Translations under genes and position numbers: made by a program | Assembly: GCA_004431415.1 (NCBI GenBank) | Contig: QPMI01000335.1 | Location: 1-49,322 of the forward strand | DNA length: 49,322 nt | DNA from: Cyanophora paradoxa CCMP329 | Taxonomy: Eukaryota; Plantae; Glaucophyta | Direction: 5' to 3' | In this document: positions 37,062 through 49,322 of the stretch, piece after piece | How positions within the stretch are numbered: the stretch's first letter is position 1 | Layout: each line of letters opens with the position of its first letter | The notes under the pieces: generated by a model | Database searches by the model: none | What the model saw: the letters and a program-made list of their open reading frames with translations, nothing else | What the model was told of the DNA's origin: nothing

Positions 37062-40024
37062 ATGCTCGCATCAGCAGTCCGGCAACCGGCGTCGAATATC
37101 GTCGGTGCGGCGGCACGCAGCCTCATCAACGCCTCGCCCCGCCACGTCGCCGCCGCCGCCGCCGCTCGGCCCGAGCTCCGGTTCTCGTACTCGCCGCGTC
37201 CCGTGTCCGTGCTTAGCCACAGCGCGTTCCTGGGGAGTCGCGTCGCAGCTGGTGCGAAGCTAGAGCCTCCCGGCCCGCGCACGTCGTCGCTCCCTCATGA
37301 CTCGGCCGGGCGCAGTCAACGTCGCGGCCGCGGCGCGTAGCTCGAGCGCGGCGCGGCGAACTCTTGTCCAGGCCTCCGCGGCCGCCCCTGCGGCGGCCAA
37401 GCGCTCCAGGTCCGCGCGAAGCGAGCGCCTGCGCACGCGGCTCGCGTCATCGCGGACCTGGAGCTAAGGCGCGAGCACGGCGCAGCAAGATCGATGTGAT
37501 CAAGACGCTGCAGGAGCGGGGCCTGGTGTTCCAGCTGACGGACGCAGAGATGGGCGCCAAGCTGAACGGCGACGAGCCCGTCACCGTCTACGCCGGCTTC
37601 GACCCCACCGCCGACAGGCGCGCCCGCCTCGCAGCGCCGGCGCCGCGTCGCGCGGGGCCGGCCTCCGAGCGGGCGGGGCAGCCTGCACCTGGGGAACCTG
37701 GTGGCGATCATGGCGCTCGCCCACTTCCAGCGGGCCGGCCACCGGCCCATCGCCATCGTGCCCGCCCCGCCCCCCCCCCCCCCCCCCCCCCCCCCCGCCC
37801 CGCCCCGCTCCTCGACCGACCGCCTCCGCCGCCCGCAGGTCGGCGGCGCCACGGGCCTCATCGGCGACCCCTCGGGCCGCAAGACCGAGCGCGACCTGCT
37901 CGGGGTGCGCCATCCCTGTACCCCCTCCCTTCCCCCGGGACCCGGCCCCGGCCCAGCGGCGCTGAGAGGGCGGGGCGGGGCAGGTGGAGACGATCGAGAA
38001 GAACCTGCGGGGCATCGAGGAGAACCTCTCGCGCTTCATGAAGTTCGAGCCCGGCACCATCGGTGCCCCGCACCCAGCACCGCCCCTCCCGCCCCCGCGC
38101 CCCCCGACCCCCGCCCCCAGACGGCGTTGCCATCCAGCCCGCCAAGATCATCAACAACATGTCCTGGTGCACGACCCTCTTCTCGCGCGTGCCCTCTCCT
38201 CCGGCTGACGCGTACGCCCTCAGGTACGAGGACAAGAACGTTGTCCAGTTCATCCGCGAGGTCGGCAAGCACTTCCGGTGCGCGGGCTCGGATCCGCGCA
38301 CCGCCGTTTCTCCCGTCACCGGCCGCGCAGCCTCTCTACCATGCTCAACAAGGATTCGGTCCGGATCCGGCTGGAGCAGGTTCCAACCTCCCGCGCTCCC
38401 CCCGCCCCCCGCCCCCGCCCCCCCCTCCCCCCCCCCCCCCCCCGCCCCCCGCTCCTCTCCCTCCCCTCTTTTCCCCCAATCGCGCCCCGAACGGTACCCC
38501 GCTGATCCCTCCGGTGCAGGCGGAGGAGGGCCACGACCAGGGCGGTATGTCCTTCACCGAGTTCACCTACCAAATCTTCCAGGTACCCCTGCAATCTTCC
38601 TATACCCCTCCCCCATCCCAGCCATCCGACGGGGCGGGGCAGGCGTACGATTTCATGCACCTGGCGAGGGCGGAGAACTGCCGCGTCCAGGTTCGAACCC
38701 GAGGCGCGGGCCTGGGCGTCGCGGCGGCCCCTCACTTTGCGGGCAGGTCGGGGGGAGCGACCAGTGGGGCAACATCACGGCGGGCACGGAGCTCATCCGG
38801 AAGGCAGCCTGGCCGTCCCATGCCCCTCGGCCTCGGCCTGGGGCGATGCGGGGCGGGGCGGGGCGGGCAGGTGCTGCCGGGGACGGAGGCGTTCGGGCTG
38901 ACGCTGCCGCTGATGACGACGGCGAACGGGGAGAAGTTCGGCAAGTCGGCCGGCAACGCCATCTGGCTCGACGAGGAGAAGACCTCCTGCTACGAGCTCT
39001 TCCAGTGCGCCCCGCGCCGGGCCGCGGGGGGCGGGGCGGGGGGCGAGCGGGGGCGGCAGGTACTTCCTGCGGTCGGAGGACGCGGACGCGGGGCGCTTCC
39101 TCAAGGTCTTCACCTTCCTGCCCCTCGACGAGATCGACGCCATCATCGCCGAGCACGAGCAGGCCCGCCCCGCCCAGCATAGCGGGGCCCCCGTGCGCTG
39201 ACGGCGGCGGCGGGGCGCGGGGCGCAGGCGCCGGAGAAGCGGCACGCGCAGCGCATCCTCGCCGAGCAGGCGAGCCGGGGCCCCCGCCCGCCCCTCCCCC
39301 CGGGGCGCGCCTTTGGCGGGGGCGCTGAGGGGGGCGGCAGGTGACGCGGCTGATCCACGGGGAGGCCGGCGTGGCGAAGGCCCAGCGCGCCACCAACGTC
39401 CTCTTCGGTGCGCCCCGGCCCCGGCCCCGGACCCGGCCCCGGCCCCGGCCTCGCTGCCGGCGGGGACGAGCCGGGGCGGGGCGGGGCGCAGGGAACGAGG
39501 ACCTGCGGGGCCTCTCGGCCAAGGAGGTCCTCGGCATCTTCAAGGACGTCCCCTCCGCCGAGCTCTCCCGCGACCAGGCCCGCCCGCCCGCCCGCCCCGC
39601 GGCAGCCCCGCCCCGCCGCCCGCCCCTCACGCCGCCCCGCGCAGGTGGTCGGCAAGGACGTCGTCTCCGTCGTCGCCGCCGCCAAGGCCTGCCCCTCTAA
39701 GGGTGACCCCCGCCTTCCGCCCACCTCCCGCGCCCGCGCCCCCGACCCCGCCGCCGACCGCGCCCCGCCCCGCTCCGCCGCCGGCAGGCGAGGCCCGGCG
39801 CCTGATCCAGAACGGCGGCCTCTACCTCAACAACGAGAAGGTCCCGCCCGCCGGCCGGCCGGGGCCCTCGGGCGCGCCGCGCTGGTCGCTGAGGGATGTG
39901 GGGCTGGCGGGACGCGCAGGTGACGGCGGCGGAGCAGGTGGTGGGGGAGGGGGACCTCGTGGACGGCTCCATCGCCATCGTCCGCACCGGCAAGAAGAAC
40001 TTCCGCGTCATCCGCGTCCTCTAG
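37062..40024 (+). CDS. YARS2: Organellar (mitochondrial YARS2-type) tyrosyl-tRNA synthetase with S4-like C-terminus, about 20 exons
   Basis: Arg/Ala/Ser presequence, YAGFDPTAD|SLHLGNL (HIGH), [22 protein letters not shown]|[26 protein letters not shown] (KMSKS), SK|[22 protein letters not shown]. Stop at 40022-40024. Confidence 0.95.
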
Positions 40025-40500
40025 CGCCCCGGCCCCGGCCCCCGCCCCGCGAGCGCGAGCCGCCTTCGTCTTGGCGACTGCCAGGCTGGATATCGATCCG
40101 AGCGAAAGTGTTCCTCGAGCTCTTTACATCAGCGCGTGCTGCGCCTGCGCATGCGCGCGGGGGGGCGTATGAAGAAGACATTCGCTAGCCAGCTGCCGCA
40201 GTACTGCGGCAAGAAGCACAGCCGTTGAGCTGCGCGCAGCTGTGGTCGGCAGGGCCGGCGCCGCATGCATGTAGCTGCAATGTACTAGTACTAGTATATG
40301 GCCACTCGAGCTCAAGGAAAGCTGCGCGAGCGCTAGCTCTAGCGCGTGCAAGCGTAGCGCTAGCGCTAGTGGGGGGGGGGGGAGGGGGAGGGGGGTAAGA
40401 CAGCCTTCTAAAGCAACGTACCCAGTTTTCGGGCAGAGTACCTAGCGGCGGCGCCAGTGTTCGTGATGAGCAAGCCCGATTGTTGCTAGGCTCTGCTGTC

Positions 40501-40545
40501 CGGATCGACTGCCCGCAGCTCGTCGGATCGACTGCCCGCGGCTCG
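40501..40545. repeat. 22-nt direct repeat upstream of the NACHT gene
   Basis: CGGATCGACTGCCCGC(A/G)GCTCG at 40501 and 40524. Confidence 0.75.
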
Positions 40546-40650
40546 GAGGAGCTGCAAGGAGCCGCCTCGGATCGCCGGCTCAGATCGTAGCTAGGTGCGG
40601 CCGCTTCGTGCAGTCTGCGGCGCAGACACCAGCAGCCTTCCATCTCAACA

Positions 40651-43600
40651 ATGGGGCCTCAAAACGCGGACTTTCCGGACGGCGGCGGAGTGCCGATGTC
40701 GCCCGGCTTCGAGGCGTCGGTCCCGTATGGCGGATACTTGTTTGTCAAGAAGATGCTAGGTTGGAGGAAGCGATATGTGCACATATACTTCGACAAGCTC
40801 GCGTACGGGTCCAAGAAAGAGGTGCGCCGAGCCCGTGCGCCGAACCAGTCTCGAGGCTGACTGGGGCGCGACGTGCCGAGCAGTCGAAGCAGAAGAGCTA
40901 CTCATACCCGGAAACGTCGAAGTGCATCATTCGGCCCATCGCGAACCCGAAGGGCGGCAAGTTCGGGTTTCGGGTGCGCGCGAGCCCTCCCGAGTCGGCC
41001 GCGGGGCCGCGGCGAGCGCGGCGCGGCGCAGGTCGACCTGCCGGAGCGGAAATTTGCGCTGTACGCCGAGTCGGAGGGGGAGCGGGACCTGTGGATGAGG
41101 TGCTTCCGCCTGGTGCACTTCCGGCTCTCCACGGACGAGGTCAAGTCCGACGACGAGGAGACCGGCGGCGACCCGACCGTGCGCCCCGTTTCCTCGCTCA
41201 TCCTGCCACCTCGCCGCCCCCGACCCCGCCGAGCGGCGCGCGCGCAGTCCGGCGGGAACCGGACGTCGAATGAGGGCCGCCCGTCGCTCGATGGCGCCTC
41301 GAGCGCGACGCCGTCGTCCCGGAGGGCGAGCGCGAGGCACGCGATGCCGCCCGAGTCGCCGCCCGACCCGCAGACCGTCGTCAGCTTCGCCCCGGCCGAC
41401 GGGCACCAGTTCCGGGAGGACGCGCTGGTGCCCATCCCGACGGGCCCCGCCCTCTTCCGCCTGGCGGAGGCGCCGGTGTGGGAGTCGCCCTCGCGGTCGC
41501 TGCCGCCGGACGCGGCGGTGCAGCTGGACAACATCACGCGCGCCTCGTTCCTCGCCGCCTGCGCCCGCGACGTCCGCGACAACGGCGAGTTCCTCGCCCT
41601 CGCCAGCAGGTCCCGCCCCCGCCCCGCCCCGCCCCGTCCCGCCCCGCCCCGCCCCGCCCTCGCTGCCGCCGCGCCGGCGGCTGAGGCGGTGGCGGCAGCC
41701 TGTGCGACGAGTTCGCGGGGCTCTCGGCGCCCTCGGCGGCCGAGTGCCTCGAGCTCGCCGCCCTCGTCACCGCCCGCAACATCCCCCTCACCAACCGCGT
41801 CCGCCCGCCCCCTGCTTCCCGGCGCGCCGCGCCGGGCCGAGCCGGGCGGCGGGGCGCAGGTGCTGCTGCTGCTCCTCGCCAAGGGCGTCCTCCCGTTCCT
41901 GGACGCGCCCCCGGGGAGCCCCTGCTTCTCCTGGGCCCCCGTCGCCGCCCTCGGCCTGGTGCCGCCCCCGCCCCCCCGCCAGCCCTGGCTGCCAGCCCGG
42001 GGGCCGCTGAGCGGCTGGTGCGCGTCGCGGCCGCAGGCGCTGCAGCACTCGTGGCCCGGGGCCGTCGAGGAGGGCACCGTCTACGCCGTCTCCTCCGCCG
42101 TCCTCGTGCGCCCCGCCCCGTCCTCCCCGCCCCCGCCCCGCCCGGCCACGGCGGCTTCCGACGGGGCCGGCAGGCGATGCTGCGGCGGGCGTTCGGGGCG
42201 GCTCCGGCGTCGGCGACGGCGGCGAGCCAGGCGCGGGCGGCGCTGCGGGCGGCCGGCATGGCCGACTCGCTGGGCGGCTCGGGGGAGTGGGAGGAGGACC
42301 CGCCCGGCGCCGCCGAGGAGGAAGAGGAGGAGGAGGAGGAGGAGCCCCTCGCCGCCGCCGGGCACGCCCCGGGGGCCGCCGCGGGGCCGGGGGCGTCGCG
42401 GCGGGGCAGCACGGCGGGGGCCCCCCGAAGCAGGCGTACGACCTGACGCCGGTCTTCGTGCTGCAAGCGGCGGGGGAGCTGCTGGAGGGCCTGGGGCGAC
42501 GGCGCGCACGGGGCGGCGACGATCGCGCAGTGCTGCGCCGAGGCCGGCGCCCTCTCCGGCGTCGACGCCTCCTGCGCGATGCCGAGGCCTCCGGCTCCGG
42601 CGCGGCGGCGGAGGCGCGGCGGCCTCGCGGGTGCCGGCGGCGTGCGGGGCGCTGCAGGGCGAGGCGGCGTACGCGCGCAGGCCCTGCGCGACCTCGCCCT
42701 CCTCGCCGCCGAGTCCGCCGCCGGCGGCCGCCCCGTCCAGGGCTCCCCTCCTTTGACCAGGTCCCCGGCGCCCCGCCCGCTCCCCGCCCCGCCAGCGCTG
42801 AGGGCCGGGGGGCGGGGCGGCAGGCGCTGCGGAACGCGGCGGTGCACGTGAACGTGGGGGTGGGGGCGGCGGTGCGGCTGGCGGGGATGCAGGACGCGGT
42901 GCAGTCCGTCGTGCAGCTCCCCCCGGGGGCCCTCCTCGACTGCTGCCTCCTCCTCGACGGGCCCGAGCCGCGCTCCCCGGACCAGGCCCGCCCCGCCCCG
43001 CCCCGCCCGCTCCGCTTCGCTGACGAGGCGGCGGGGCGCAGCGGGCGGCGCCGCAGCCGCTCTCGATGCCGTTCGCGGCGGCGACGATCTCGCAGCTGGC
43101 GCCGGGGGGCCTCAAGGACCAGGTCCCCGCCCCGGGCCCCGGCGAGAGGCCCCAGCCCGTGCGCCCCGCCCCCCGCCCCGGGAGACCGCCGCCGCCCGAC
43201 CGAGCGCTCCGAGCCGGCGCAGGGGCGGGAGTGGTACGCCGCGGCGCGCCTCATCAAGGCGCTGCTGGACCGCGGCCGCACCGCCCAGGTCCGCCCCCGC
43301 CCCCGCCCCCGCCCCCGCCTCCGGGGGAGGGCCCGAGGCAGGGGCGAGCGGGCTGGGCGGGCGCGCAGGTGGAGATCCTGCTGGGGGAGCCCTCGTTGGG
43401 CCGCCTCCTCGCCACGACGCCGCTCGGGCCCTGGCTCGCCGGCCGCTTCCAGATCCTCGCCGCCTCCGCCCCCGAGTACCACGTGTTCAGCGGGGCGGCC
43501 AAGTGGCTGGCGAGCCTGGCGCGCACGGCGGGGGACTCGCCGGCGCTGCTGGCGGCCGCCGTGCACGCCCTCGTCGAGCTCGGCTGCCACCCGGACGGCC

Positions 43601-46600
43601 GCCGCCGCAAGGCCGCCCGCAACCTCCTCCGCAGCCTCCAGCAGCAGAGCACCTCGGGCGCCGCCGCCGCCGCCTTCAGGGCCGAGGTGGCGCGCGCCGC
43701 GGGGGCCGGGCGGCGGGGGCGGCGGGGGCGGCGCTGGACGCGCTGCCCGTGCACACGTCGTCCCCCGCCTGCGCCATCGAGAGCGTGGGCGGCGGGGTCG
43801 ACTTCGTGCGCGCCGCCCGCGCCCGCTTCGGCCGCCTCCCCGGCGCCACCCACTTCAGCGACGTCGACGAGGTCCCGCACCCGCCCGCGCGGCCCCTTCC
43901 CCCCCTCCCCACTGACTTTCGGCGCAGGCGCTGGACTTTGCGCGCGAGGAGTTCTACGGGACGGGCGTCGGGCGGGACCAGGTGCGCGCGGCTCGCCCCT
44001 CGGGCCGCCCCCCGACGCCGGCGCCGGCGCCGAGGCCGACTCGTCGCCCCGGGCAGACGTACGTGCCGCTGATGGCGGACGCGCTGGACTGCAACGGGCC
44101 GGCGCCGGGCCCGGCCGCCCTCATGGCGGCCTCGGAGCTCGAGGGCGACCTGGACACCCCCGCCGGCCCCCCCGCCCCTTGCGCCTCCCCCGCCGACGCG
44201 GCGCGCCCGGCCCCTGCCCACCCCCGCCCCTCGCCCCTCTGACGCCCCCGCCCCCCCGCAGGTGGCGTTCGCGCTGAACGTGGTGAACGGGAACCTGAAC
44301 CAGCTGGGGGACCCGGCGAGCGCGCCCAAGGTGGTCCTCCTGGCGGGGCCCTCGGGCGCCGGCAAGTCCTCCGCCCTCCAGCGCCTCCACCGGGCCCTCT
44401 GGGAGGGGTGGAGCCCCGGGGGCGCCAACCCCGTGCCCCTCTACGTCTCCATGCGCGCCGGCGCCGGCTCCGGCGGCGGCGCCGCGCCCCTCCGCGAGGC
44501 CCTCGAGGCCCTCAATCTCTCGGTACCCCCCCGCCTCCCCGCCCCGCCGCGCCCCGCCGGCCGCCGACGCGCCCCTCCTCCTCCTCCTCCGCCCGGCAGG
44601 AGGAGCGGGCGCGGGAGGCGCAGGCGCGGTACAACTTCGTGCTGCTGGTGGACTGCTTCGACGAGGGGCGCCTGCGCGAGAACCTCTGGGACGCCCTCGT
44701 CCGCCCCTGGGGCCTCTGCGCCGTCGTCCGCCCCGCCCCTCGCCCCGCCCCGCCCGCCCCGCCCGCCTCTCGCCGACGCGGGGCGGGGCGGGGCGGCAGG
44801 TGGCGTGCCGGACGGAGTACCTGGCGAGCCTGGGGCCCGACTACCGGGCGCTCTTCGCGCCGCAGGGGACGCAGACGCGGCTGCTGGCGGAGCTGCACCT
44901 GCGGCCCCTCGACCGCGCGCAGGCGGCCCGCCTGCTCGCCGTCGTCGAGGCCCGCCTCGCCGCCGCCGCCGCCGCCGCCCCCATCCAGCGCCACGACTCC
45001 ATCGACTCCTCCTCCAGCCAGCTCGTCCGCCCCCGCCCCGCCCTTCTTTCTACCCCTTCTTTCTTGACGCCCGGGGGCAGCTGGGGGAGCCGCGCCCGCC
45101 GCCCCCGCCGCGGGCGCCGCCGCCGAACCCGAACGCGGGGGTGCCGATCCTGCAGCGCATCCAGCGGATCCCGGGGCTCGAGTGCCTCGCCCGCAACCCG
45201 CTCCTCCTCGTCATGGCCGCCACCGCGCTCCCCACCATCGAGCAGGCCTACTCCGGGCCCGCCCCCCGCGGCCCCGTGCGCCCTGCCCCGCCCCGCGCCG
45301 CCCCGCCATCCGGCCCGGGGCTCACAGCGGGGCGGGGGGGCAGATCGGGCCGTACGAGGTGCACATGTACTACGTGGAGGACCGCATCCGCACCAAGCTC
45401 TTGGGCGGCGCCGCCGACGAGGCCGGCGCCGGGGGGTCCCTCCCCGGCGGCCCGGGCCCCGCGGGGCGGCCGGCGCCTCGGCCTCGTCGGCGGCGGTGCT
45501 GCGGGCGGTGCGGCGGCTGTGCGGGCGGGCGGCGGCGGCGCTGCGGGGCGGGGGCGCCTCGGAGCGGCGCTTCCCGTCGCAGTCGGCGGACGATCTCTCC
45601 GCCGCCGTCCTCGCCCGACTCGGCGTCGGCGTCCGCGGCGGGCCCGCCCCCGTCGCCGGCCACGCCTCCTTCGCCCCCGCCGGCCCGGCGTGGACGGCCG
45701 CGCCCGCCTCTGGTCCCAGCTGCTCGGCACCGCGCCGGCGTCGGCCTCTGCCTCGGCGGCGGTGGCGGCGGCGGCGGCGGCGGCCGTGGCGGTGGCGCCG
45801 CTGGCGCGGGGCCGCGGGCCCATGGGCGCCTGGCTCTTCGTCGCCTTCCCCACACGTGCGCCCGCCCGCCCGCCCGCCCGCCGCCGCCGCGCCGCCCGCC
45901 GCGCCGCCCGACCTCCTCCCGGCGCAGGGGTTTGCTGGATTTCTTCCTCGCGGACTTTGCGCTGCGCTCGCTGGCCTCGCGCCACAAGGGCAGCGGGCGG
46001 CCCCGGCGCGCCCTCGCGCTCCTCGCGCGGCTCGACTGCGCGGCCGACGCGGGGGCCATCCGCCTCCTTGCCGACCGCGCCCGCGAGGACACCGCCCTCC
46101 AGCGGGTGCCCCCCGCTTTCCATCTCCCGCCCTCTTCCCTTCCTCACGCCGCTCTCGTTCTCAGGTGCTCCTCGACGCGCTCGTCTCGTCGCGCTCGGTC
46201 CGCGGCGGCGGCGGCGGCGATGACGACGACCTCGTGCTCGCCCTGAAGCGGCGGGGCCAGCCGGCGGCGGCGCCCTCGGGGGGCCCCGGGGCGGCCCTCG
46301 CCTCGGTGCTGGCGGCGGCCGGCGTGCCCCTCTCCAACTGCGACCTGAGCGGGGCGCGCCTCGCGGGGGCGGACCTCTCCGGGGCGATCATGGAGGGGAC
46401 GCTCCTGCGGGGGGCCGACCTCTCGCGGGCCTGCCTCGCGGCCGCGTGCCTGCAGCGGCGGACCTGCGGGAGGCCAAGCTGGAGGGGGCCGAGCTCGGCG
46501 AGCGCCTCCCCGTCACCGTCGAGGGGCCCCCTTCCTCCGCCTCGCCCTCGCCCGCGACGCCCCGTACCCTCCGCCCCGCCGCTGCCCCCCGCCCCGCCGC

Positions 46601-49322
46601 GAGCCCGCCGAGCGAGCGCGCGCGCGTGCGCAGGTGATGGCGCTGGCGTGCGCGGACGGGAGCGTGACCGTCGCGGACGCGGCGACGGGCCGCACCGTCC
46701 GCTCCCTCGTCGTCTGCCCGCCCCCGACGAGTACGGCCAGTCCGCCATCGAGGCCCGCCGCCCTCCCCCCTCCCCTGCGCCCCGCCCGCGCTCGCGCTGA
46801 CGCTGCGGCGGCGGCAGGCCCCGCCGGGGCCCCCGTGGTGACGTCGGTGGCGATCTCGGCGGACGGGCGCGCCGTGGCGGCGGGGTGCGAGGACGGCACC
46901 CTCCGCGTCTGGGACGTCCAGAGCGTGCGCCGCCCCCGCCCCGCCTCGGCCTCCCCTCCACCCCGCTGACGCTCGGGCAGGGGCGGGAGGTGGCGACGCT
47001 GGCGGGCACCCGATGTCCCCGTGCACGCCCTCCGCCTCTCCGACGACGGCGCCGCCCTCCTCTCCGGTGCCCCGCGCCCCCGCCCCTCCCCCCCGCACCG
47101 CCCGCGCCCGCTCACGCGGCGGGGCGGGCAGGGTCGTACGACAACACGGTGCGGCTCTCGCACGTGGCGGGCCCGCACGCCGGCCGTTCCGCCGTCTTCG
47201 GGCGGGAGGACCTCGGGGGCGAGGCCTGGGTGCGCCCCGCCCCGCCCCTCCCCTCCTCGAAGCGGGCGGGGCGGGGCCGACGGGGCGGGCGGGCAGGTGT
47301 CGGGGGTGGACGCCTCGCGGGACATGGGCGTGCTCGTCTCCGCCGCCGGCGACGAGCGCCGCGCCCTCGTCTGGGACCCCGCCTCCCCGCCCCCGCGCCG
47401 CCCTCGCCGGTGCCCCCGCCCGCCCATCCGCCCCGCTCCCCGCCCCGCGCCTGCTCAGCCTCCCGGCAGGGTTCCACGAGGCGCCCGTGGGCGGCGCCGG
47501 CGTCTCCCCCGACGGGCGCTTCGCCATCACCGTCGCCGGGACGGCTCCTGGGCCCTCTGGAACGTGCGCTTCGCCCCCGAAGAAGGAAGCGTCCCGAGGA
47601 TCGCCGCGCCCTGACTCTCGCCCGCCGGCGCGCCCCGCCCCGGCAGGCCCTCTCGGGCGAATTCCTGCACGGCAACCGCGGCGGCTCGCGCGTCCGTGGG
47701 CCCCTGCCCCCGCCCGCCCCGCGCCGCTCCCCGGGCCCGGCGGCCCCGACGCCGAGGAGGGTCCGCCCGCCCCGATCCCCTCCCGCTCCTGCCGCGCCCG
47801 ACGCGGCTGCAGCGGACCCGGCGATGGAGCGGGCGGCGGCGACGCGGCGCGCGTGGGCCGTCTCCTGGCGCGGCGGCCTCATCCTCGTCGCCGGTGCGCA
47901 TGCCGCGCCGCTGCCGGACCTGCGGGGTCGGCAGGCGGGCCTGACGGGGCCCCGTGCAGACGGGGAGAGCGTGGTGCTCTTCGACCTGAACTCGGGGGCG
48001 GCGGTGGGCGCGTGGCGACGGGCGCGCCGCCCCTCTCCCTCGCCTGCTCCGAGGACGGCCGCCTCTTCTTTGCCGCCCTCGCCGCCGATCCCGGCGACGC
48101 CCCCGCCCCGCCCCGCGCCGCGGCGCCCGCCGCGGCGCCCGCAGCGTGCGCCCCCGCCCGCCCCGCCCCGCCCCGCCCGCCCCGCCCCGCCGCTCCGAGC
48201 TGAAGCCGGCGGCAGGTGCCGGCGGGGCGGACGGTGCTGGTGGGGAGCTGGGCGGGAGGCGGCGCGGGCCTCGAGCGGCTTCGGGCGGCCTGCGGCGCCG
48301 CCGCCGAGAAGCGCCAGCTCCTCTGCATCGGCGACGAGGTCCCGCCCCCCCCCCCCCCCCCCCCCCCCCGCCGCCCGCCCCGGCGGCGCCGGGCTGAGAC
48401 GCGGGGCGGCAGAGGGCGAGCTGCGGCTCATCTCGCTGGCGTCGGGGCGGACGGCGCGGGCGCTGCGGCCGCCCCCGAGATGGCGGGGCGCCGACGGCGG
48501 TGGACCGGCCGGCCTCGGGGCGCGCGGGGGCGTGCGGGCGGTCTGCTGGTCGGCCGACGAGTCGAGCGTCGCCGCCGCGTACGACTCGGGCGGCATCGTC
48601 GTGCGCCCGCCCCCGCGCCCCTGCCGGCCCGCCCTCCGCCCTCCCCTCACGGCGCCGCGGCGCGCAGCTGTACGACGTGGAGTCCGGGCGGCCTTCAGCC
48701 TGGTGCAGTCGCCCGTGCCGCCGGCCTCGATCTGCTTCGCGGGCCCGGCGCCCGCTGCCTCGTGGCCTGCGGCGGCCCGACCCGCTCACCGGCGCCAGCC
48801 TCACGTGCGCGCGCGTCGCGGCCCCGCCGCCCCGCCCTCTCCGCGCTGAGCGCCGGCGCGCGCAGCGTGCACGACGTCGGCTCCAGCAGCGGGCGCCCCG
48901 TCTCGGGCCCCGGCGCCGACGGCGCCCCGCTCGCGCCCGTCCTCGCGATCGCCGCCTGCCCGCCCCTGCCCGGCCAGCCGCGCTGGTGCCCGCCCAACGC
49001 CCTCCCCGTCGCCGCCGGTCCGCCCCGCCCCGCCCCGCCACCGCGCCCCGCGGCGAGGCGCGCGGGCGACGCGGGGCGCAGCGTGCGGGGACGGGACGGT
49101 GGAGCTGGTGGACGCGCGGACGTCGGGGCGGCTGCGGACGCTCTCGGCGCACGGGGCGGCCGCCGCCTGCGTCGCCTTCGCCCCGGACGGCCGCTTCCTC
49201 GCCTCGGGCGGCCTCGACGCCACCGTGCGCCCGCCCGCCCCGCCCCGCCCCGCCCCGCCCCAGGCCGGGAGCCCGAGCCGGGGACGGCGGGCAGGTGTGC
49301 GTCTGGTCGCTGGCGAACGACT
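40651..49322 (+). CDS. Large NLR-like STAND protein: PH - helical/ARM-like - NACHT NTPase - pentapeptide repeat - WD40 repeats (3' end beyond window)
   Basis: PH: GGYLFVKKMLGWRKRYVHIYFDKLAY...FALYAESEGERDLWMRCF. Walker A VVLLAGPSGAGKSS (about 44331-44372), Walker B FVLLVDCFDE (about 44636-44665), sensor VACRTEYL, LARNPLLL. Pentapeptides LSNCDLSGARLAGADLSGAIMEGTLLRGADLSRA (about 46330-46500). WD40: VTSVAISADGRAVAAGCEDGTLRVWD and VAFAPDGRFLASGGLDAT|VCVWS. Contains a few single-base frameshifts in G/C runs. Confidence 0.85.

Follow-up and report, generated by a model that had tools for sequence, protein, structure and literature searches.

A probable single PH-NACHT-pentapeptide-WD40 gene behind two public gene models of the glaucophyte Cyanophora paradoxa

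A contig of the glaucophyte Cyanophora paradoxa CCMP329 (QPMI01000335.1, assembly GCA_004431415.1; its 49,322 nucleotides form the window analysed here) carries at 40651-49322, on the plus strand, what is probably one intron-rich nuclear gene encoding a PH domain, an ARM_5-like helical region, a NAIP-like NACHT module, a short pentapeptide solenoid and a long WD40 region, split wrongly into two genes by the public annotation. An initial annotation, made from the letters alone, had placed here an intronised NLR-like gene with ARM, NACHT, pentapeptide and WD40 parts starting at 41400. Its listed motifs were recovered in the order given (13 of the 13 searched, plus strand, 41742-46502), alternating among the three frames as expected of short exons. 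The PH domain and the splitting of the gene in the annotation had escaped it, the 3' end it covered is cut by the contig, and the gene starts not at 41400 but at 40651, three PH exons ahead.

The exon with the P-loop (44262-44522) was used as a phmmer query against 1.84 billion representative proteins, and the best match (E 5e-45) was P0001, the EukProt EP00741 protein tig00001388_g8589.t1, which identifies the window as C. paradoxa contig tig00001388. Spliced alignment placed P0001 on the window in 32 exons at 100% identity (42579-49321), in agreement with the earlier proposals that the DNA was probably from a glaucophyte and that the gene was fully intronised in an alga. The last residue of P0001 is the final codon of the window and a stop codon is absent, so the 3' end of the gene is incomplete, the contig almost certainly ending where the window does. 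Word-index protein searches of the locus returned no match or just the models of the locus itself, and were of use in that the upstream frame recovered a second model, P0011 (tig00001388_g8588.t1, 436 amino acids), which maps to 40651-42443 by spliced alignment, also at 100% identity. In the public annotation the locus comprises two genes, g8588 with the PH domain and half of the helical region, and g8589 with the remainder. Open frames alone are uninformative here, because the G+C content of about 80% in the gene region leaves long frames in all six phases. The parts of the gene as we read it are the following.

40651..49322, plus strand: whole gene, from the ATG at 40651 to the contig end (maps of P0011 and P0001; colinear with paralogue P0003)
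40651..41178, plus strand: PH domain, exons 40651-40821, 40884-40973 and 41032-41178 (Pfam; alignment to the PH domain of P0003)
41248..42443, plus strand: low-complexity linker and N-terminal half of the ARM_5-like region, exons 41248-41609, 41699-41798, 41860-41958, 42037-42105 and 42174-42443 (map of P0011)
42444..42823, plus strand: gap between the public models, connecting exons uncertain, candidates at about 42488-42560 and about 42660-42735 in frame 2
42824..44062, plus strand: C-terminal half of the ARM_5-like region, exons 42824-42985, 43042-43158, 43223-43288 (WY motif), 43369-43686, 43782-43871, 43928-43981 and one from 44057 (map of P0001; alignments to P0003 and paralogue P0009)
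44057..44261, plus strand: uncertain junction, TYVPLMA read from 44057, annotated as a 6-nt micro-exon at 44057-44062
44262..46105, plus strand: NACHT nucleoside triphosphatase (NTPase) module (Pfam, alignment A1, family profile)
46165..46517, plus strand: linker, 'VLAAAG' junction motif and about 8 pentapeptide repeats (Pfam; family profile positions 439-508)
46634..49322, plus strand: WD40 beta-propeller region, short exons with about 10 WD-like units, truncated at the end of the contig

Evidence for one gene comes from a paralogue. P0003 (C. paradoxa tig00021433_g21275.t1, 2781 amino acids) holds a PH domain (27.8 bits), helical motifs, NACHT, pentapeptide block and WD40 region in this order within a single model, and in spliced alignment it follows the window colinearly, with the first PH exon at one end and the last WD40 exon at the other (40732 to 49306); a segment of P0011 is 35% identical to residues 160-345 of P0003. 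The locus might alternatively hold two genes as annotated, a small protein with PH domain and helical tail (g8588) and a NACHT-PPR-WD40 gene (g8589) beginning at about 42579. Two models do exist in the public annotation, a frame-2 stop at 42444 follows the exon beginning at 42174, and the interval at 42.4-42.8 kb is of low complexity, with exons that are not fixed. However, the annotated start of g8589 at 42579 falls in a junk-like frame rich in R, P, A and G; ARM_5-like matches flank the annotation break (profile columns 78-207 upstream, 351-385 downstream), so that a reading as two genes would halve a domain; P0003 has all the parts in the same order in one model; and in every bacterial and fungal relative ARM_5 stands directly ahead of NACHT in a single open reading frame. 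We regard two genes as quite improbable and infer a single transcript for 40651-49322. Across the gap between the models (42444-42823) an open frame was maintained by an ab initio exon chain, and the candidate at 42660-42735 resembles, as judged by eye, the 'YA.QAL' motif of P0003 and ARM_5; the ab initio chains were overfitted (tiny exons, pentapeptide block spliced out) and served for splice-site statistics only. Just before the g8588/g8589 break, the linker contains a poly-Glu stretch encoded by a (GAG)10 run at 42315-42344.

The public models at the locus are wrong in that they are split, read through introns and lack WD40 signature exons. One such exon left out of the public model is '..CEDGTLRVWDVQS', and by such omissions and by running on through introns the model avoids the sites of the frame breaks described below.

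The NACHT module is distributed over the following exons.

44262-44522, plus strand: exon with Walker A, GPSGAGKS
44600-44725, plus strand: exon with Walker B, VDCFDE
44800-45024, plus strand: exon with the CR..YL sensor region
about 45156-45275, plus strand: exon with NPLLL..LP
45344 to about 45405, plus strand: exon
about 45800-45855 and 45928-46105, plus strand: exons with the winged-helix motif HTGLLDFFLAD

All 10 of the 10 invariant columns of the family alignment A1 (Mortierella, Mycoavidus and Cyanophora modules) are kept, and the NTPase motifs are intact: the module retains GPSGAGKS, LLVDCFDE, ACRTEYL, F.P, the E and Q positions and 'NPLLL..LP', at 22-26% identity to Mortierella and Mycoavidus. 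In stop-free frames, Pfam recognised the N-terminal part of the NACHT at 44331-44459 (23 bits). A hidden Markov model (HMM) of the family matched six exons in profile order, with nothing comparable elsewhere in the window; its matches extend into the pentapeptide and WD40 parts.

44325-44453, plus strand: family HMM match, profile positions 44-86, E 2e-9
44621-44692, plus strand: family HMM match
44800-44922, plus strand: family HMM match
45153-45245, plus strand: family HMM match
46297-46455, plus strand: family HMM match, profile positions 439-491, frame 0, E 2e-7
46455-46505, plus strand: family HMM match, profile positions 492-508, frame 2
46835-46927, plus strand: family HMM match

Among solved structures, the best relative of the NACHT family profile is the NLRC4 NACHT (E 2.6e-6, covering the first ~150 of 399 profile positions). 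The winged helix of the window gene reads '..LPHTGLLDFFLAD', the family consensus being 'YRF.H.S.LEYF'. A NAIP-like winged-helix 'HETHS' motif, F.H..[FY]QE[YF]..A, distinguishes a NAIP-like kind, expanded in Entomortierella, from the TLP1/TEP1-like NACHT common in fungi (PMC12258605). Judged by its motifs and its best match, the NACHT is NAIP/NLRC4-like (N-NACHT) and not TEP1-like, TEP1 and NWD1 being set apart by motif description and not by direct comparison with their sequences; grouping with such housekeeping types, which the initial annotation had named as fatal to its proposal, was not what the NAIP-like motif and the NLRC4 match indicated. Neither NB-ARC nor LRR (leucine-rich repeats) gave a match in any Pfam scan of the locus, as expected from the claim that the protein is distinct from plant NB-ARC-LRRs. 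A frame-2 peptide near 45795-45850 was considered as the end of the NACHT followed by a frameshift, and was rejected as the frame-1 peptide '..RRLPHTGLLDFFLAD' fits the family motif much better. The public model of the paralogue P0009 (C. paradoxa tig00000042_g15554.t1) lacks the Walker B segment (columns ~130-150 of alignment A1), which probably reflects one more exon overlooked in annotation and no true loss.

Downstream of the NACHT, preceded by the '..IL..AG' junction, lies the pentapeptide block (Pfam, 37.4-38 bits at 46339-46455, cut-off 20.2), and then the WD40 region, for which Pfam WD40 (PF00400) gave 66.9 bits on P0001 and 32 bits at 46832-46915 (cut-off 27). The order of NACHT, pentapeptide and WD40 is thus as first described (Pfam, 23, 37.4 and 32 bits). 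A WD-repeat HMM matched at 46838-46921 (E 5e-11) and 49129-49230 (E 2e-11). Where many WD40s had been reported, a WD40 region is indeed present; it consists of two significant repeats and about 8 degenerate WD-like units, which were read from the three-frame translation and the alignment with P0003, in a total count limited by the contig end.

At the other end of the gene, the PH domain (PF00169) scored 33 bits in the whole of P0011 and 36.2 bits in its residues 1-140 (cut-off 25.1), and its beta1-beta2 segment is basic (K-K...R-K-R); on single N-terminal exons Pfam gave only a weak PH match. The helical region between PH and NACHT bears on the claim of an ARM region. Residues 170-400 of P0011 matched the ARM_5 family profile with E 0.016 (hhalign, single sequence; template columns 78-207), a two-sequence profile of P0011 and P0003 with E 0.0049 (columns 112-192), and residues 20-300 of P0001 with E 0.043 at the 'WY' motif (columns 351-385). 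Pfam ARM_5 (PF23948) gave no match for the window gene, and a local ARM_5-family HMM run against all stop-free window frames matched the paralogue P0009 and none of the window exons. P0009 itself matched the ARM_5 profile with 94.9% probability (E 4e-8 over 278 columns; Pfam 18.6 bits), and among relatives Pfam ARM_5 reached 151 bits in Mortierella, 231 in Mycoavidus, 199 in Ca. Glomeribacter and 125 in a metagenome-assembled genome (MAG) of Chlamydiae. A helical region ahead of the NACHT is therefore there, as claimed; its ARM_5 kinship is clear for one paralogue, P0009, and weakly supported for the window gene, whose region we call ARM_5-like.

Several observations weigh against the reading as one intact receptor gene. 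P0003 is itself an automatic model and could be a fusion of two adjacent genes. The ARM_5 matches of the window gene are individually not significant (E 0.005-0.04), though colinear. Pfam NACHT (PF05729) scored 26.6 bits on residues 300-900 of P0001 and 24.9 on the full protein, against a gathering score of 26.7; the sister P0003 scored 36.2, and the lower score of P0001 is because of its exon structure and the junk inserts in the model. The WD40 units are for the most part degenerate, four frame breaks and a junction without a GT donor go beyond canonical splicing, so that the copy could be decaying, and the function is proposed purely by analogy, with no PADLOC model matching the Cyanophora proteins.

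The gene carries about 40 introns, which are short (~47-200 nt) with a donor GT[GC]C[GC]C and an acceptor (G)CAG. In many of them the GT[GC]C donor is followed at once by a microsatellite, (CCCGC)n or (CCGCCC)n, perhaps a splicing signal or else a trait common to C. paradoxa introns:

41612-41659: microsatellite intron start
43291-43323: microsatellite intron start
44728-44767: microsatellite intron start
48101-48191: microsatellite intron start
49230-49261: microsatellite intron start

At the junction ahead of the NACHT, TYVPLMA (comparable to Y[IV]P.. in P0003, P0009 and the Mycoavidus protein P0008 in alignment A1) reads past its sole GT at 44063; 44066-44261 is without any GT, and the acceptor lies at 44261. 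According to the donor scores, a GC donor at 44114 would also maintain the frame across 44057-44261. The frame is broken at these places:

46452..46456, plus strand: break 1, a missing base within the pentapeptide repeats, taking frame 0 to frame 2 at about 46454
46996..47006, plus strand: breaks 2 and 3, two frame changes in about 6 nt (0 to 2, then 2 to 1), located at a G and a C run
47534..47538, plus strand: break 4, at a run of G (about 47536), where frame 2 gives way to frame 1 between '..FAITVAG' and 'DGSWALWNV'

At break 1, the family HMM matches abut in both DNA and profile (positions 491/492), yet differ in frame. Breaks 2 and 3, judged by eye from the three-frame translation and P0003, are less certain than break 1; the WD40 'GH' dipeptide occurs in the middle frame only. 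The counterpart of break 4 in P0003 is 'DDGSRVVWEL'. Each of the four lacks a single base next to a run of G or C, and the homologous exons have no stops.

These breaks, if real, would make the locus a decaying pseudogene copy in which the annotated open frame was threaded by a gene predictor through DNA of 80% G+C. Such decay would fit four breaks within 1.1 kb, the degenerate WD40 units, a very long branch in the NACHT tree (2.6 substitutions per site) and the junction without a GT donor. However, one-base deficits that all lie by G or C runs, in exons whose homologous frames are free of stops, form the pattern of homopolymer under-calling in a long-read contig (presumably from Canu, as the 'tig' contig names suggest), all invariant NTPase residues are retained, and junk inserts of the same kind occur in the paralogue models, which suggests an assembly-wide problem. 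We therefore take the four breaks to be assembly errors by homopolymer under-calling, a cause that we infer only, because such runs are very common (241 G/C runs of >=3 in 3.3 kb); a pseudogene seems unlikely. Domain censuses on this proteome would miscount genes of this kind, and the contig probably contains homopolymer errors.

Upstream, the neighbouring gene ends at 40024, its peptide at 39896-40024 (plus strand) resembling a tyrosyl-tRNA synthetase C-terminal domain (Pfam SYY_C-terminal E 0.003, TyrRSs_C E 0.008), and 40025-40650 is likely intergenic and 5' region, a layout that also speaks for one gene from 40651 on. The G+C content is lower at the gene start, about 64% for 40001-41000, which holds PH exons, compared to about 80% in the rest of the gene.

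The P-loop exon search retrieved nine proteins: g8589 itself, two Cyanophora paralogues, proteins of Mortierella (M. alpina and other species) and one Mycoavidus protein. The closest proteins outside Cyanophora among the 1.84 billion, together with the shared domain order, bear out the suggested resemblance to the Mortierella/Mycoavidus family. Scanning one genome per bacterial species yielded 22 loci in Mycoavidus (P0008 is a protein of M. cysteinexigens) and 1 in Ca. Glomeribacter, and more distant relatives in a Chlamydiae MAG, Ca. Anammoxibacter and Nitrospirae/Magnetobacterium. A maximum likelihood NACHT tree (37 rows, 378 columns, LG+C20+F+G4), to be read as unrooted and with Cyanophora rows of deviant amino-acid composition, placed Mortierella inside Mycoavidus (97/98) in a Burkholderiaceae + Mortierella clade (96/94). 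Outside this clade, the three Cyanophora sequences formed a clade of their own (94/89) on long branches, in which the window gene is sister to P0003 (99/91).

NACHT-PPR-WD40 receptors common to Mycoavidus and Mortierellomycota have been described, and transfer between the two has been published (bioRxiv 10.1101/2021.12.02.471044). The initial annotation had considered that the gene was possibly moved horizontally; a gene taken up recently from the Mycoavidus/Mortierella lineage, or from an endosymbiont like it, that then gained introns would account for that common architecture and for the best matches outside Cyanophora being proteins of Mortierella and Mycoavidus. Such a recent transfer is not supported, because the Cyanophora copies stand on their own deep branch, outside the Burkholderiaceae and Mortierella among which Mortierella is nested in Mycoavidus. 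Forcing Cyanophora and Mortierella together cost 20 log-likelihood units (p-AU 0.0096; the group was chosen after the tree was seen), the NACHT identity is only 22-26%, and the locus has host-like G+C and about 40 introns. We consider recent transfer highly improbable. Its many introns and a composition like that of the host suggest that the gene has long resided in the nucleus, and on the tree the Cyanophora copies fit best as a deep lineage of their own within the wider NACHT-PPR-WD40 group.

With Nonomuraea as a far outgroup, a quick tree put Cyanophora beside a Chlamydiae ARM_5-NACHT protein (SH-aLRT 81; both are long branches, and we take it as a lead only). This protein, from the Chlamydiae MAG (L024 1379-4474), has neither pentapeptide nor WD40 and was the nearest bacterial neighbour of Cyanophora in that tree. 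A chlamydial contribution of genes to Archaeplastida is debated.

The core of the gene is not an undescribed system, contrary to what had been proposed for the locus: bacteria of several phyla carry NACHT-PPR-WD40 proteins with swapped N-terminal effector domains. These bacterial NACHT-pentapeptide(-WD40) conflict proteins have a common core and a variable N-terminal module, as in the following loci with differing heads.

L025, 5017-9084: bacterial cousin with NACHT-pentapeptide(-WD40) core
L027, 4930-7755: bacterial cousin with NACHT-pentapeptide(-WD40) core
L029, 4900-9372: bacterial cousin with NACHT-pentapeptide(-WD40) core
L031, 1124-6676: bacterial cousin with NACHT-pentapeptide(-WD40) core

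The cousin in Ca. Anammoxibacter has a PRTase-CE head, and the one in Magnetobacterium/Nitrospirae has a metallophosphatase (calcineurin-like phosphoesterase) head (L027 matched the PADLOC candidate PDC-S60 with E 3e-64). A tblastn search of plasmids found mostly bare pentapeptide proteins, the only informative match being an open reading frame of Nonomuraea gerenzanensis with a TIR_2 + NA-iREase3 head. Look-alikes in the ESM Atlas were NACHT-pentapeptide clusters, most often cyanobacterial, and are a lead only. The bacterial heads are enzymes and their genes single uninterrupted open reading frames, whereas the window gene has a PH/ARM_5-like head and introns. PADLOC models gave no match for P0001 or P0009 and a match only at the level of the P-loop for P0003.

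With the NACHT-PPR-WD40 proteins of Mortierellomycota and Mycoavidus cysteinexigens, the window gene shares a helical ARM_5-type region, NACHT, '..IL..AG' junction, pentapeptide and WD40. It differs in the added PH domain, some 40 spliceosomal introns, the weak ARM_5 match, the low NACHT identity given above, its separate deep clade, and the single NACHT, compared to two tandem NACHTs in several Mortierella/Mycoavidus proteins. Animal NAIP/NLRC4 NLRs (4KXF, 3JBL) provide the closest solved NACHT, the winged-helix pattern F.H.s..E[YF]F.A and a presumed ligand-gated oligomerisation, but have an LRR sensor and a CARD or BIR head where the window gene has a WD40 sensor and a PH/ARM-like head. HET-E-type proteins act in non-self recognition. 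Fungal HET-E/NWD-type NACHT-WD40 proteins are alike in joining a STAND NTPase to a WD40 sensor, but are without the pentapeptide block and have HET, HeLo and similar heads. Among fungal NACHTs the TLP1/TEP1-like type predominates (PMC12258605). The likeness to plant NB-ARC-LRRs is confined to the three-part logic of a STAND receptor, NB-ARC and LRR being absent from the Pfam scans of the window locus. Our literature search found no account of NACHT receptors in Cyanophora, and in the searched literature a membrane output of an NLR through a PH head was not found described.

By analogy with NACHT and AP-ATPase receptors of solved structure, such as NLRC4, Apaf-1 and other STAND proteins of their kind, the WD40 propellers would hold the NACHT closed and ADP-bound until a ligand binds; nucleotide exchange would then open the protein, and the NACHT modules would oligomerise and gather the N-terminal modules, the PH domain and the ARM_5-like scaffold. 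The pentapeptide block, which occupies the same place in bacterial and fungal relatives, would act as a rigid spacer. Because the N-terminal module consists of a PH domain and an ARM_5-like scaffold and no enzyme, a non-enzymatic output is expected, most likely recruitment to or clustering at a phosphoinositide-bearing membrane, or the binding of a partner; membrane targeting is thus suggested by the PH head. A role in biotic conflict (immunity or non-self recognition) is most likely, by analogy, because the same core is fused to recognised defence effectors in bacteria. The protein might instead be a non-immune scaffold, a phosphoinositide-regulated, NTP-gated platform of housekeeping signalling, a possibility we hold to be a minor one. 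It would suit a head of PH and scaffold that is neither a death nor an enzymatic effector domain, the missing PADLOC match and an ARM_5 of unknown function; it sits poorly with a family that is multi-copy in Cyanophora (paralogues P0003 and P0009), with the classical conflict effectors fused to the bacterial core and with a NACHT of the NAIP/NLRC4 rather than the TEP1 type.

The NLR-type receptors usually discussed are plant NB-ARC-LRRs, animal NACHT-LRRs and fungal NACHT/NB-ARC proteins with WD40, TPR or ANK repeats. More speculatively, and with rather low confidence, glaucophytes may retain an old bacterial-type NACHT-pentapeptide-WD40 lineage, acquired early in the Archaeplastida line, perhaps from a chlamydial or cyanobacterial source, and rewired to membranes via a phosphoinositide-binding PH head. 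The NACHT-pentapeptide-WD40 architecture had been linked to Mortierella and its endobacteria; its range is much wider and older, and takes in an early-branching lineage of Archaeplastida. The NAIP-like NACHT genes of a glaucophyte bear on what the first algae had before NB-ARC-LRRs, and the presence of a PH head hints that an NLR-like switch may be coupled to membrane phosphoinositides.

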